A stretch of DNA of 64,000 bases from Octopus sinensis (taxonomy: Eukaryota): the NCBI RefSeq assembly GCF_006345805.1, contig NC_043022.1:14260001-14324000 (forward strand), written 5' to 3'. A model generated the notes under the pieces. That model made no database searches, had not been told where the DNA came from, and saw nothing but the letters and a program-made list of their open reading frames with translations. The first letter of the stretch is position 1; each line of letters opens with the position of its first letter. The position numbers were made by a program, and so were the translations under genes. Positions 5,758 to 43,989 of the stretch are shown one piece after another.

Positions 5758-5812
5758 ATGATGCTTCTTCTATATTGGAGTATTTTAGTCATAATATTCC
5801 CTCAGTTAATAA
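5758..5812 (+). CDS. Exon 1 coding part: signal peptide [18 protein letters not shown]
   Basis: Acceptor-like tttgcaag at 5681-5688 upstream; accATG at 5758; hydrophobic N-terminus; donor A|GTAAGT at 5813 (phase 1). Confidence 0.75.
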
Positions 5813-41800: not shown

Positions 41801-43989
41801 GTGCTGCCTGACTGGCTCCCGTGTCAGTGGCACGTAAAAGCACCATTCAATCATGACCGATGCCTATGCCACCTGACTGGCACATAAAAAGCGCCATTCA
41901 AGCATGGTTAAGGCTAGTGCTGCCTGACTGGGTCCCGTGCTGGTGGCATGTATAAAGCACCCAGTACATTCTCGCAGTGGTTGGCATTAGAAAGGGCATC
42001 CAGCTGAAGAAACTTTGCCAAATCAGATTTGAGCATGATGCCGCCTCCTGGCTTGCCAGTTCTCCAATCAAACCATGCCAGAATAGAAGGCAGATGTTAA
42101 ACGATGATGATGATGGTGATGAGATGGATGGATGGATGGATAGATGGATGGATGGATGGATGGATAGATAGATAGATGGACGGATAGATAGATGGGTGGA
42201 TATATAGATATGTTTCTTTATTAGCCACATAGGGCTGAACTCAGAGGGGACAAATTACAAAGTAGAGCATTTCTTTTTGGGAAGAAAAAGAAAAAAAATG
42301 GGGTAGGTTTTCGATCAAAAGGGATCGTAAAAAAGAAAGAAAAAAATTATCAATAGGGATCGTGTATCACAGAAATGTCATGATGTAAAGTGTAAGGGGG
42401 AAACAGATAAGGTTTATCTGTGGAAATAAAAGCCTATGGAAAAGACACCGGTAACCTGGGTCAATAATGTTACATGTTACCACATTTGTTTGCAAGTAGG
42501 TAACTCTGTTTTAAATTTTTCTGGGTTCATAGGATTACGCTCAAGGTGGCTTCGTCATTCATACGTGCCATCCTTGCTACATTCACCCATCTTTTTTTGA
42601 AACATTCGCTAGACAAAACTTGCCTCTCTACTCTCACTTTCCTTTTCAAGTGATACTTGAAGAAGTTGATGAGAGATTGACCAGAGAGGAAAGTGTTTGT
42701 CTCCAATCCTTTCAGACGCATCCACCAGACACATTCTTTCGCCATAGCCACATATATGATGAAAATAGCTCTTCCTTCCCGTTTGAAGGAAGGAGGCGTG
42801 ACAATATTGACAATAGACTCGGCTGATAAACCAACTCATCACACACGTGACAACAGTCGTTCGACATAAGCCCACAGATCGGAAATGGTTGGACACTGCA
42901 CGAGTGCGTGCAGAACGGTTTCGTCACTCTGACCACATTTCGGGCAGGTCGGCCCAATGTTTCTCAAGCTGTGTCTGAAGAGCTTATTCCGAATGGGTAG
43001 CGCTTCTCGGTAGCACTGCCAGGCCAGAGATCTCTGGAAGTTGTCCATAGGTCCCGGCCCGAAAGTCCTCTTGAACAGGCGGGTCAGGTATTCCTCGTCA
43101 ACACCCAAGTTCGCCCCGAGATCATCATCGTACCTCCCCTCCACTAATCCCCTATAGAATGCTTTGGTTGTGTTGAAGTTGCTCAAAGTCGACCTGGGAT
43201 GGCATAGTTACTTGAGAGCAATGCGACACTCGCGATGCCATTCGCCAGATAGATAGAGAGAGAGAGAGAGAGAGAGACAGATAGACAGACAGACAGGCAG
43301 ATAGAGAGAGACAGAGACAGAGACAGACAGACAGACAGACAGATAGACAGACAGATAGATAGATAGAGAGTGAGAGACAGACAGACAGATAGACAGACAG
43401 ACAGATAGATAGAGAGAAAGAGAGAGAGACAGAGACAGAGACAGACAGACAGACAGACAGATAGACAGACAGATAGATAGATAGAGAGTGAGAGACAGAC
43501 AGACAGATAGACAGACAGACAGATAGATAGAGAGAGAGAGAGAGAGAGACAGATAGACATATAGACAGATAGACAGACAGACAGACAGATAGATAGATAG
43601 ATAGAGAGAGAGAGAGAGACAGATAGACAGACAGACAGATAGATAGACAGACAGATAGATAGATAGATAGATAGATAGATAGATAGATAGATAGATAGAT
43701 AGATAGATAGACAGATAGATAAAGATATATGTATACATATACTTATATATGTATTGTCTATTGCAGGTCTAAGATGCTCAGAAACAACAAAGGCAAAGGT
43801 AATATATCAGGATCTCAAGTCACTTCCTCCTCCATGCAAAATACCAACTCAATTTATATCAACGGACCTGGACAAGAATTACACTTCCATAGGCAAAAAT
43901 CTGAAGAATTTTATGAAAGTTTAGATTCAGATCCAGGAATTTCAGCAGCCGGAGAATATGATAATGTAACTTATCTTAAGCCAATATAA
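5758..43989 (+). CDS. Predicted 11-exon gene (join of the exons listed below), ~518-aa single-pass type I membrane protein with four tandem ectodomain repeats and a Tyr-rich cytoplasmic tail
   Basis: Exon lengths 55+194+91+206+85+233+94+224+100+52+223=1557 nt, a multiple of 3. Intron phases match at all 10 junctions, all acceptors are AG after pyrimidine/T-rich tracts, and 9 of 10 donors are GT. The architecture (signal peptide, 12 N-glycosylation sequons, TM, tail) is coherent. Confidence 0.8.
7700..8982 (+). mobile_element. Tc1-family transposase pseudogene
   Basis: HTH N-terminus (GRKPKLS), [16 protein letters not shown] and [15 protein letters not shown] motifs with stops and frameshifts. 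Right TIR GGTGTTTCCATTATTTTGTCCAACC at ~8952-8977; left TIR not found. Confidence 0.92.
9856..10049 (+). CDS. Exon 2 (repeat 1 long exon): [16 protein letters not shown]...DTGRIYW
   Basis: Acceptor cattttctAG; open frame; donor TGG|GTAAGT at 10050; phase 1 to 0. Confidence 0.85.
11866..12081. mobile_element. TTAA-flanked (piggyBac-type) MITE, ~220 bp
   Basis: TTAA|CCCTT(T/C)GTTACC...GGTAAC(A/G)AAAGGG|TTAA. Other copies: 12104-12236 (partial), 22438-22660, 26794-28226 (split by Helitrons), 28490-28718, 28742-28970. Related variants at ~5980-6175, 20560-20790 and 32270-32485. Confidence 0.8.
12595..12848. repeat. (GATA/GACA)n compound microsatellite, representative of many (also 43250-43725, plus TA, CA, AAT, CT and CAT tracts throughout)
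   Basis: Directly visible. Confidence 0.97.
14019..14109 (+). CDS. Exon 3 (repeat 1 short Cys exon): [30 protein letters not shown]
   Basis: Strong acceptor ttttattttAG; phase-0 frame open with two Cys; size matches the paralogous short exons. The expected phase-1 donor reads GGAAGC rather than GTAAGC. Confidence 0.65.
15387..16260 (-). pseudogene. Exon-like Thr/Ser/Asp-rich (mucin-like) segment with frameshifts; inverted paralogue at 24140-24560 and partial paralogue at 23900-24140
   Basis: Shared acceptor-like TTCTTGCAG|GTTAT..AATAACTGTCCAGTGGGAGGCCAATGT; two ~40-aa RDD.Q..TS..repeats in the minus copy. Confidence 0.45.
16468..16673 (+). CDS. Exon 4 (repeat 2 long exon): (M)[19 protein letters not shown]...GRFLLDKK
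   Basis: Acceptor ctctctcatttctAG; donor AAG|GTGAAC; phase 1 to 0; Trp at the same offset as in exons 6 and 8. Confidence 0.75.
17152..17430 (+). mobile_element. tRNA-derived SINE family C
   Basis: GGAGGCGCAATGGCCCAGTGGTT..GGTTTCGATTC head; near-identical second copy at 36615-36898. Confidence 0.85.
18895..19575 (+). mobile_element. Degenerate mariner transposase relic
   Basis: [10 protein letters not shown]...QWKHP and PHPP(Y)SPDLA-like segments with frameshifts. Confidence 0.8.
19809..19893 (+). CDS. Exon 5 (repeat 2 short Cys exon): [28 protein letters not shown]
   Basis: Acceptor ttttacttttAG; donor G|GTAAGT at 19894; phase 0 to 1. Confidence 0.85.
20830..21335 (+). mobile_element. Degenerate RTE LINE fragment
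   Basis: Frameshifted [16 protein letters not shown]...LNISW and downstream GRP-type region. Confidence 0.65.
22125..22357 (+). CDS. Exon 6 (repeat 3 long exon): [14 protein letters not shown]...SIHISK
   Basis: Long polypyrimidine tract plus AG; donor AAG|GTAAGT at 22358; phase 1 to 0. Confidence 0.88.
22700..23512 (-). mobile_element. 5'-truncated RTE (BovB-like) LINE, second subfamily
   Basis: 200-aa [14 protein letters not shown]...[10 protein letters not shown]...[21 protein letters not shown]. Confidence 0.92.
24740..26210 (-). mobile_element. Penelope-like element: RT C-terminus, GIY-YIG domain and 3' region
   Basis: [19 protein letters not shown] and C-terminal [12 protein letters not shown]...[13 protein letters not shown] are typical of Penelope ORFs; frameshifts present. 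Confidence 0.85.
24842..24929 (-). ncRNA. Minimal type I hammerhead ribozyme in the Penelope 3' region
   Basis: Minus strand: TTCC-CTGATGA-GAAGA..TCTTC-GAAA-CATATG-TC-GGAA. Core intact, palindromic helix III, GUC cleavage triplet. Confidence 0.8.
26962..27467 (+). mobile_element. Non-autonomous Helitron 1
   Basis: 5' TC(TATATATA), 3' hairpin CCCGAGCAACGCCGGG then CTAG. Confidence 0.85.
27468..28165 (+). mobile_element. Non-autonomous Helitron 2 with ~101-bp internal tandem repeats
   Basis: TC start directly after the CTAG of Helitron 1; same 3' hairpin and CTAG. A 5' partial copy lies at 30035-30300. Confidence 0.85.
28280..28373 (+). CDS. Exon 7 (repeat 3 short Cys exon): [31 protein letters not shown]
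   Basis: Acceptor atttttcAG; donor G|GTAAGT at 28374; phase 0 to 1. Confidence 0.85.
31419..31530 (+). ncRNA. Minimal type I hammerhead ribozyme (Penelope-type)
   Basis: ATCT-CTGAAGA-GGCCTT..AGGGCT-GAAA-CAGCTG-TA-AGAT; palindromic helix III ACAGCTGT; GUA triplet. Confidence 0.7.
32022..32245 (+). CDS. Exon 8 (repeat 4 long exon): [14 protein letters not shown]...NKSLRINE
   Basis: Acceptor tttttatttcAG; donor GAA|GTAAAT at 32246; phase 1 to 0. Confidence 0.85.
32497..33667. repeat. 28-bp minisatellite, ~42 copies (ATGTAGAGATGTTAGGGAGTCAGGCTAC)
   Basis: Directly visible tandem array without spacers. Confidence 0.97.
34381..34480 (+). CDS. Exon 9 (repeat 4 short exon, no Cys): [33 protein letters not shown]
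   Basis: Acceptor ctatcatttcAG; donor AAAG|GTATTT at 34481; phase 0 to 1. Confidence 0.75.
34640..35048 (+). mobile_element. tRNA-derived SINE family A (full-length example; the most abundant repeat here)
   Basis: tRNA-like head (GGAGTGGCTGTGTGGTAAG..GGTTCAGTCCC), central microsatellite, tail ending AAGTAAAAGAGTA. Other copies or parts: 1-120, 1225-1625, 3962-4350, 7420-7627, 16745-16975, 18190-18565, 20180-20540, 21585-21945, 29275-29680, 30410-30710, 44090-44290, 47265-47470, 53890-54080, 56075-56465, 57140-57250, 58230-59455 and mirror copies to 64000. Confidence 0.88.
35170..35700 (-). mobile_element. Degenerate Tc1 transposase N-terminal fragment
   Basis: MGRKCD..LKK...[19 protein letters not shown] region, then a frameshifted [19 protein letters not shown] segment. 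Confidence 0.7.
39151..39202 (+). CDS. Exon 10: transmembrane helix [18 protein letters not shown]
   Basis: Acceptor tttttgtttctcttctttAG; donor AG|GTAAAC; phase 1 to 2; fully hydrophobic. Confidence 0.85.
39690..42120. mobile_element. RTE-X-like LINE with 5' inversion: minus-strand ORF2 segment (39690-41655) joined to a plus-strand 3'UTR and tail (41657-42120)
   Basis: Minus-strand RT motifs ([47 protein letters not shown]); the plus-strand part ends in (GAT)n. Confidence 0.85.
42205..43250 (-). mobile_element. 5'-truncated L1/Tx1-clade LINE (zf-RVT C-terminus and 3'UTR) embedded in GATA/GGAT repeats
   Basis: [18 protein letters not shown] (CX2CX8HX4C) followed by the C-terminal helical region; 3' end GTGGCTAATAAAGAAAC. 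A 3'-end-only copy lies at ~12848-12920. Confidence 0.82.
43767..43989 (+). CDS. Exon 11: cytoplasmic tail [11 protein letters not shown]...FYESL...[11 protein letters not shown]
   Basis: Acceptor tgtctattgcAG; phase 2 completes an AGG (Arg); basic juxtamembrane residues; stop TAA at 43987-43989. Confidence 0.8.

Follow-up and report, generated by a model that had tools for sequence, protein, structure and literature searches.

A 64,000-nucleotide stretch of the Octopus sinensis genome (contig NC_043022.1, positions 14,260,001 to 14,324,000 of the forward strand; hereafter the window, in whose numbering all positions are given) raises the question of whether its positions 5758 to 43989 hold a single gene and, if so, what kind of protein that gene encodes. 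A preliminary description of this DNA had proposed a hidden, orphan-like receptor gene with 11 exons. Our analysis identifies one gene on the plus strand with 12 exons and a coding sequence of 1599 nt for 532 amino acids, running from the start codon at 5758 to a TAA stop at 43987-43989 (Table 1). We lean towards the reading that this octopod-restricted, fast-evolving gene encodes a type I receptor with a PLAT-like fourth module and a cytoplasmic tail that would dock signalling proteins when phosphorylated. The gene structure and the protein architecture, taken by themselves, we hold to be nearly certain.

The gene model is carried by splice phases and homology. The 11-exon chain of the preliminary description could be rebuilt exactly (1557 nt, 518 amino acids, phases 1,0,1,0,1,0,1,0,1,2), and its fit is far beyond chance, as judged from tblastn matches and from the RefSeq protein XP_029651709.1, which coincides exactly with the C-terminal part of the corrected model. 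The chain had missed one exon, now exon 10, which was detected through 14 residues of XP_029651709.1 that the 518-residue product lacks. The long exons and those encoding the transmembrane segment and the tail were bounded by reading AG/GT sites around the peptide motifs of the earlier description, all of which were recovered on the plus strand at the places indicated; exons 5 and 7 came from a listing of phase-compatible short exons. Exons 3 and 6 were fixed by aligning homologues and by a tblastn search of the window with 12 homologues. That search matched exons 1-9 and 12, on the plus strand only, with E-values from 2e-5 to 1e-45, and found neither a second copy nor an antisense gene in the 64-kb window. 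Exons 10 and 11 are supported by the RefSeq product and by an O. vulgaris locus (L005). A draft model of 496 amino acids, with exon 3 at 14952-15024 and a shorter exon 6 ending at 22309, was ruled out by the homologue alignment.

Relatives of the gene share its structure. Exon lengths are equal in an O. sinensis scaffold (L001) and in two O. vulgaris loci (L002 and L005), where the AG/GT sites agree at all alignable junctions. The paralogue loci L005, L006 and L007 have the same exon boundaries and the same pairing of a long exon with a short one. CAI9741503.1, an O. vulgaris protein of 532 amino acids, is collinear with the corrected model over its full length at 88% identity. Two in-frame donors separated by 48 nt are present in exon 6, a weaker one at 22309/22310 and another at 22357/22358, and the former is skipped in most relatives. 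Alternative splicing that trims part of module 3 is possible, because the O. bimaculoides paralogue P0007 lacks the stretch between these two donors.

The gene proved not to be hidden. The locus already has a RefSeq annotation (CM016884.1), in which it appears as two genes, LOC115224679 and LOC115224892, both labelled "uncharacterized"; the term orphan overstated the case in view of these partial models and of the full-length O. vulgaris relative. LOC115224679 and LOC115224892 are one gene, wrongly split. The split falls exactly at the donor of intron 3, a site whose GG had gone unnoticed in the preliminary chain, and it arose because this donor is broken; L001, L002 and L005 all have GT. The product of LOC115224679, XP_029651397.1 (P0026), is a protein of 161 amino acids that covers exons 1-3 and shares its first 113 residues with the corrected model. 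It reads past the GG, is spliced from a cryptic donor 33 nt downstream (14142/14143) and ends in a cryptic terminal exon. The locus of this protein (L003) matches the window without a difference over 25.6 kb, which places the window at CM016884.1:14,260,001-14,324,000. The product of LOC115224892, XP_029651709.1, has 372 amino acids and runs from an internal methionine at 16608 to 43989. The NCBI annotation of CM016884.1 speaks for two genes, one for a secreted 161-residue protein and one for a 372-residue membrane protein. Yet each full-length relative (P0051, P0003, P0004, P0008, P0012 and P0019 of Argonauta) joins both parts in one protein, the 372-residue model starts in the middle of module 2 without a signal peptide, and the end of the 161-residue model has no homologue. 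We therefore regard the two-gene annotation as extremely improbable.

The same base bears on whether this copy of the gene works. A GG donor would block the normal removal of intron 3, which counts against the window copy as a source of the receptor, and the copy may thus be a null allele, unable to yield the full-length protein. We consider it a serious possibility, at somewhat less than even chances, that the window holds a null allele or young pseudogene in which the GT-to-GG change diverts splicing to the cryptic donor 33 nt downstream and leaves a shortened secreted fragment or a degraded mRNA. Such a copy is suggested by the GT of the other three loci, by the exact position of the RefSeq split, by the read-through and cryptic exon at the end of XP_029651397.1 and by the leaderless start of XP_029651709.1. 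It is harder to reconcile with the 12 exons, all of which keep open frames, with the remaining splice sites, all of which are canonical, and with the possibility that the GG is a single-base assembly error.

The differences from L001 are also unlike those expected of neutral decay. The two sequences are 98.6% identical, introns included, and exons 1, 2, 5, 6 and 7 are the same in both. All 16 coding differences in exons 3 and 4 are nonsynonymous, and there are no frameshifts; the donor change comes in addition, and the flanking intron sequence is identical. In total, 17 substitutions lie in or at these two exons, compared with 3.0 expected from the divergence of introns (P about 2e-8). Were the window copy null, intact function would be left to scaffold VCDQ01005164.1, whose copy has the GT donor, and to the paralogues; a null allele is compatible with our description of the family.

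At several sites of the substitution cluster, the window has the state found in distant paralogues, and a different state is common to L001 and the two O. vulgaris copies. This mosaic of ancestral and derived states in exons 3 and 4 is not explained by a simple allele tree. The cluster was also compared with known paralogues to see whether simple gene conversion could explain it, and this was rejected, as no single donor copy matched. Diversifying selection, old polymorphism and short-tract conversion are the alternative explanations that the mosaic suggests. The family evolves fast, as had been proposed, with ratios of nonsynonymous to synonymous substitution rates (dN/dS) above 1 (1.6-2.1 against close relatives). 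Specifically, dN/dS is 2.06 for the window against L002 (P 0.054), 1.65 for the window against L005 (P 0.058) and 1.66 for L002 against L005 (P 0.16). One could envision, though we think it unlikely, that octopods invented these proteins as polymorphic receptors for the recognition of non-self, self or mates, with PLAT-like modules put to extracellular use. In that case, exons 3 and 4 would encode a hypervariable surface that contacts the ligand, formed by the last part of module 1 together with the body of module 2, and its diversity would be maintained through diversifying or balancing selection or through short-tract gene conversion. The idea draws on the 16 amino-acid-changing differences between two nearly identical copies or haplotypes of a single O. 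sinensis assembly and on the states that the window copy otherwise shares only with distant paralogues.

What kind of protein does the gene encode? The product is ordered as a signal-peptide-like N-terminus, four modules of 94-109 amino acids, a short stalk, one transmembrane segment (residues 442-458) and a tail of 74 residues. Read by inspection, it appears to have the signal peptide, the single membrane span with basic residues and the luminal sequons of a type I single-pass membrane glycoprotein, in line with the cell-surface protein that had been suggested. The hydrophobic N-terminus is conserved across the family, and a basic stop-transfer stretch, RSKMLRNNK, directly follows the membrane segment. 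All sequons had been assigned to the ectodomain; 12 are indeed located there, and two more occur in the tail (NIS 471 and NVT 525).

Each module is built from a long exon (phase 1-0) and a short exon (phase 0-1). The tryptophan that had been noticed just after each long-exon junction lies 3-4 residues into the exon; W25, W117 and W214 do not vary among family members, and conservation of W323 reaches at least 90%. Modules 1-3 end with conserved cysteine pairs at the positions listed in Table 1, in agreement with the two cysteines described for the short exons of these repeats. Tandem duplication, the origin that had been proposed, could be traced for one pair of modules. Modules 1 and 2 are alike by profile-profile comparison, in register, with E 4e-5 (profiles of 22-32 sequences). 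The other pairs are not significant (E >= 0.018, and E >= 0.035 for pairs with module 4), though their weak local alignments are still in register; the same comparison with 13 sequences gave nothing significant. A common origin of the four modules from a single duplicated unit is plausible and proven only in part, because modules 1 and 2 alone are detectably alike and the remainder of the case is exon symmetry and similar predicted strand counts.

Structure prediction offers a candidate fold. A model of the ectodomain, built with AlphaFold2 (AF2) on the O. vulgaris orthologue, which is 89% identical to the window protein, is all-beta with four strand blocks (predicted local distance difference test, pLDDT, 75.6; predicted template modelling score, pTM, 0.67). 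Modules 2-4 have eight strands each in this model, and module 1 has six, including two very long ones. In a Foldseek search of the PDB with the ectodomain, the high-probability matches are solely PLAT/LH2 domains of lipases, lipoxygenases and Rab6IP1, local and 97-131 columns long; PirB (immunoglobulin-type, Ig), macroglobulin-type proteins and otoferlin C2 arrays appear at low probability. Module 4 was also modelled by itself, with the window's own sequence as the first row of an alignment of 14 sequences (pLDDT 83.7, pTM 0.77). Its first 35 Foldseek matches in the PDB are all PLAT/LH2 domains, namely lipase C-terminal and lipoxygenase N-terminal domains, with structural similarity scores (TMq) of 0.47-0.63 and probabilities of 0.95-1.00, nearly all 1.00. 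C2 domains follow, at TM-scores of 0.29-0.41 and probabilities of 0.4-0.6, and no Ig or FN3 domain is among the top 50. Since the 35 best structural matches are all PLAT/LH2, the loose resemblance that the preliminary description had seen in repeat 4 is supported at the level of predicted fold, and module 4 is likely to be a PLAT/LH2-like eight-stranded beta-sandwich.

The octopus module can be compared with known PLAT/LH2 domains (PF01477), such as the C-terminal domains of pancreatic and lipoprotein lipase, the N-terminal domain of animal lipoxygenases and Rab6IP1. Like them, module 4 is predicted to be a sandwich of about 110 residues and eight strands, and most of its matches extend over 116-128 columns. 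Unlike them, it is about 10% identical in sequence, lacks a Pfam match and is extracellular, N-glycosylated, part of a tandem array and tethered by a transmembrane segment. Known PLAT domains are mostly cytosolic or appended to enzymes. LOXHD1 and other tandem-PLAT proteins, as well as polycystin-1/REJ-type proteins with one PLAT domain, share the sandwich as a repeated or membrane-adjacent block. LOXHD1 has neither a transmembrane segment nor a tyrosine tail, and the PLAT domain of polycystin is cytoplasmic. Profile searches of the PDB and of 1.84 billion proteins, together with Pfam, detected no sequence relationship between the octopus family and either group.

The tail holds four tyrosines, Y489 (SIYING), Y508 (EEFYESL), Y523 (GEYDNV) and Y528 (VTYLKPI), and Pfam identifies no catalytic domain in the protein; both points stand as first described. 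All full-length family members have several tyrosines in the tail. An acidic YExL/I motif recurs across paralogues in the forms EEFYESL, EDYEHI, DIYENL, IYEEL and DIYQNL. The C-terminal YxxP(I) motif also recurs, and P0019 of Argonauta has four units of the EQLYTQPIK type and a fifth without the tyrosine. Contexts that could dock SH2 domains are present: YING and YDNV fit YxN (Grb2), YDNV also fits YDxV (Nck), and YLKP fits YxxP (Crk). These are generic SH2 docking contexts, and the same stretches of tail fit YxxPhi sorting signals equally well.

SH2-based signalling by the tail is accordingly a prediction from motifs, and we are somewhat doubtful, at slightly below even chances, of a signalling-receptor mechanism. 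In such a mechanism, the ectodomain would be a rigid rod, rich in N-linked glycans, and would bind a ligand outside the cell. Ligand binding or clustering would lead to phosphorylation of the tail tyrosines in their acidic YExL/I, YxN, YDxV and YxxP contexts, and the phosphorylated tail would recruit SH2 adaptors. Through this recruitment, the protein would work like an immunoreceptor-type protein, as a recognition receptor with no catalytic activity of its own. LILRB/PirB, SIRP, Siglec and nephrin proteins and the hemITAM receptor CLEC-2 are similar in that they are type I strings of sandwich domains with one membrane span and a short multi-tyrosine tail (acidic YxxL/I, YxN, YDxV), in belonging to multigene families and in evolving rapidly; PirB is also the low-probability structural match of the ectodomain model noted above. 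The octopus protein differs from them in the predicted PLAT-like fold of module 4, in the tail motifs considered next and in that no homology to them was detected.

Several results weigh against the interpretation that we favour. The splice junctions are read from homology and automated annotation. Taken singly, every dN/dS excess is merely borderline (P 0.03-0.16). The tyrosine of SIYING is not conserved, being histidine or alanine in several paralogues. A canonical immunoreceptor tyrosine-based activation motif (ITAM), searched for as YxxL/I-x6-12-YxxL/I, is absent; the nearest arrangement, YESL-x11-YDNV, ends in valine. A canonical inhibition motif (ITIM), [SIVL]xYxx[ILV], is also absent from EFYESL, GEYDNV, SIYING and VTYLKP. 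The PLAT profile (PF01477) has no match at E <= 10 in the window protein or in 12 members of the family, and the predicted fold call is weakened by shallow alignments of 12-14 sequences, by similarity scores near 0.6, by a sequence identity of about 10% and by Foldseek E-values no better than 1e-3 to 1e-2. Among single modules, the structural search evidence covers module 4.

Two other explanations were considered. The modules may be generic beta-sandwiches of Ig-, FN3- or C2-like type, with a PLAT match that arose by chance or was driven by the model. The missing PLAT signal in sequence, the similarity scores with a root-mean-square deviation of 3.3-6 A, and the PirB, macroglobulin-type and otoferlin matches of the ectodomain would all be in keeping with this. 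We nevertheless judge it very unlikely given the exclusively PLAT/LH2 head of the module 4 match list, the drop in score to the C2 domains behind it and the lack of Ig or FN3 domains in the top 50.

Alternatively, the protein could be an adhesion, scavenger or endocytic receptor, in which clathrin adaptors would read YESL, YDNV and YING as YxxPhi sorting signals and lipid or protein cargo would be bound by the PLAT-like modules. YESL and YDNV do fit YxxPhi, canonical ITAM and ITIM sequences are lacking, and the PLAT/LH2 domains of lipases and lipoxygenases, the fold that module 4 matches, bind colipase or membranes. On the other hand, acidic residues before YExL/I, together with YxN, YDxV and YxxP, are typical of kinase and SH2 sites, and the repeated tyrosine unit of P0019 resembles a docking scaffold more than a single sorting signal. 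We consider an endocytic or adhesive role rather unlikely, and retain the signalling receptor as the preferred reading, at the strength given above.

How widely is the family distributed? A search of 5.8 billion proteins with the 496-residue draft returned 12 matches, all "uncharacterized" proteins of O. vulgaris, O. sinensis and O. bimaculoides, with E-values from 1e-61 to 1e-213. The window protein is 36-88% identical to this family of octopod "uncharacterized" proteins (LOC115217841, LOC106873224 and relatives), which is collinear with it over the full length and shares its exon structure. Among 1.84 billion representative proteins, a profile search recovered 30 relatives, 21 of them with E below 1e-30, and all those looked up belong to Octopus species or to Argonauta hians. 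The family thus appears, so far as seen, to be restricted to octopods. Pfam gave only weak matches, none near the gathering score, for one family protein and for all 12 members, and a sequence profile search of the PDB returned only FXYD-type transmembrane noise. In agreement with the statement that the family could not be recognised, a literature search by gene symbol and for PLAT domains in cephalopods found no paper on it. Short genomic contigs L008-L012 from Logan runs SRR11869384, SRR11869385 and SRR11869391 contain diverged fragments of modules 1 and 3; these may extend the family's taxonomic range.

Within genomes, the family is dispersed and in part clustered. Its members are on three different chromosomes in each Octopus genome, O. 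sinensis included, where two tandem paralogues lie 5 Mb from the window. The O. vulgaris orthologue has a full-length paralogue with 88% identity (L005) in inverted orientation about 31 kb away; the counterpart position is beyond the window. The absence of transmembrane and tail exons from the O. vulgaris orthologue was considered as a deletion and rejected. A 100-N assembly gap (L002 40111-40210, OX597839.1) replaces about 11 kb corresponding to window positions 35376-46795, where the stalk, transmembrane and tail exons belong, and because of this gap CAI9741502.1 ends in intron read-through (ITKGIWCI). XP_029656812.1 is cut short by the end of its scaffold, and shortened relatives of this kind are artefacts. 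The locus and its relatives are already in public databases as unnamed, partly mis-built models. XP_029651397.1 and XP_029651709.1 derive from the locus itself, CAI9741502.1 and CAI9741503.1 are O. vulgaris relatives with 88-89% identity, all four are labelled "uncharacterized" or "hypothetical", and CAI9741503.1 is the only one of full length.

Table 1. Exons of the gene and associated features, in window coordinates.
Feature	Position	Strand	Remarks
Exon 1	5758-5812	+	ATG and signal-peptide-like segment; ends in phase 1; donor GTAAGT; 100% identical to first 18 amino acids of P0001 and P0002; first exon of XP_029651397.1
Exon 2	9856-10049	+	Module 1 long exon, phase 1-0, starts TKATMW; tblastn E 2e-39 to P0002; AG/GT kept in L001, L002 and L005
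Exon 3	14019-14109	+	Module 1 short exon, phase 0-1, Cys pair C99/C104; six nonsynonymous differences from L001
Non-canonical intron 3 donor	14110-14111	+	GG, context CGGAAAA/GGAAGC; GT in L001, L002 and L005
Cryptic terminal exon	15520-15632	+	Only in XP_029651397.1; outside the family's conserved protein; no homologue aligns (tblastn)
Exon 4	16468-16673	+	Module 2 long exon, phase 1-0, (M)ARW; differs from L001 by ten nonsynonymous changes; internal Met at 16608 is the start of XP_029651709.1
Substitution cluster	14051-14111 and 16561-16669		17 changes against L001 18240-18332 and 20689-20894
Exon 5	19809-19893	+	Module 2 short exon, phase 0-1, Cys pair C196/C206
Exon 6	22125-22357	+	Module 3 long exon, phase 1-0, (D)SMW; tblastn E 2e-45 to P0002
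Exon 7	28280-28373	+	Module 3 short exon, phase 0-1, Cys pair C302/C315
Exon 8	32022-32245	+	Module 4 long exon, phase 1-0; best-conserved part of the family; tblastn E 1e-42
Exon 9	34381-34480	+	Module 4 short exon, phase 0-1, ends FSRITK; no Cys pair
Exon 10	37034-37075	+	42 nt, phase 1-1; juxtamembrane stalk and start of transmembrane segment; acceptor tttttag, donor gtaatt; in XP_029651709.1 and O. vulgaris P0051/L005
Exon 11	39151-39202	+	Transmembrane segment, phase 1-2
Exon 12	43767-43989	+	74-residue cytoplasmic tail, Y489, Y508, Y523 and Y528, TAA stop; tblastn E 1e-12 to P0003

The introns and flanks of the gene contain other elements. About 4.5 kb downstream, at 48462-48914 on the plus strand (Met at 48480), an intact single-exon open reading frame (ORF) encodes a strongly matched LRAT/PLAAT domain (NlpC/P60-type acyltransferase; PF04970, E 1.8e-28) with the NCEHF catalytic-cysteine motif; it is probably a separate gene. 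Intron 1 holds a degraded Tc1/mariner-type transposase in at least two frames (7882-8929, plus strand; HTH_Tnp_Tc3_2, E 2e-11; DDE_3, E 6e-12). Fragments of RVT_1, zf-RVT and ORFs resembling those of long interspersed nuclear elements occur on the minus strand in intron 11 (41152-41517 and 42842-43207) and at 2394-2846, 22748-23392 and 44944-45489. These are retrotransposon debris in and beside the gene. Tandem repeats include a 28-bp minisatellite in intron 8 (32496-33668; 42 copies, 92% match), a 102-bp repeat in intron 6 (27608-28112; 5 copies) and a (CAGA)n tract in intron 11 (43246-43719; 119 copies) that ends 47 bp upstream of the exon 12 acceptor. A dispersed repeat of about 400 bp, similar to a short interspersed nuclear element, is present at 1220-1620, 3960-4570, 29274-29684, 34637-35058, 59056-59455 and 62865-63274 with 86-95% identity, and is frequent in the O. 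vulgaris loci too.

For the public record, two RefSeq genes become one, an O. vulgaris model is recognised as cut by an assembly gap, and one splice-site base is a possible marker of a null allele. Tyrosine-tailed receptors that cross the membrane once and carry sandwich modules in tandem are already familiar. What would be new is the presence of PLAT-like modules in such a receptor, in a family that appears restricted to octopods; if the structure predictions are true, this would be an unusual use of the PLAT/LH2 domain as a tandem extracellular receptor module. Antibody-based immunity is not known from cephalopods, and little is understood of the molecules that they use for recognition at the cell surface. 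As multigene, fast-evolving, octopod-restricted glycoproteins with tyrosine tails, the proteins described here are concrete candidates for cephalopod recognition molecules.

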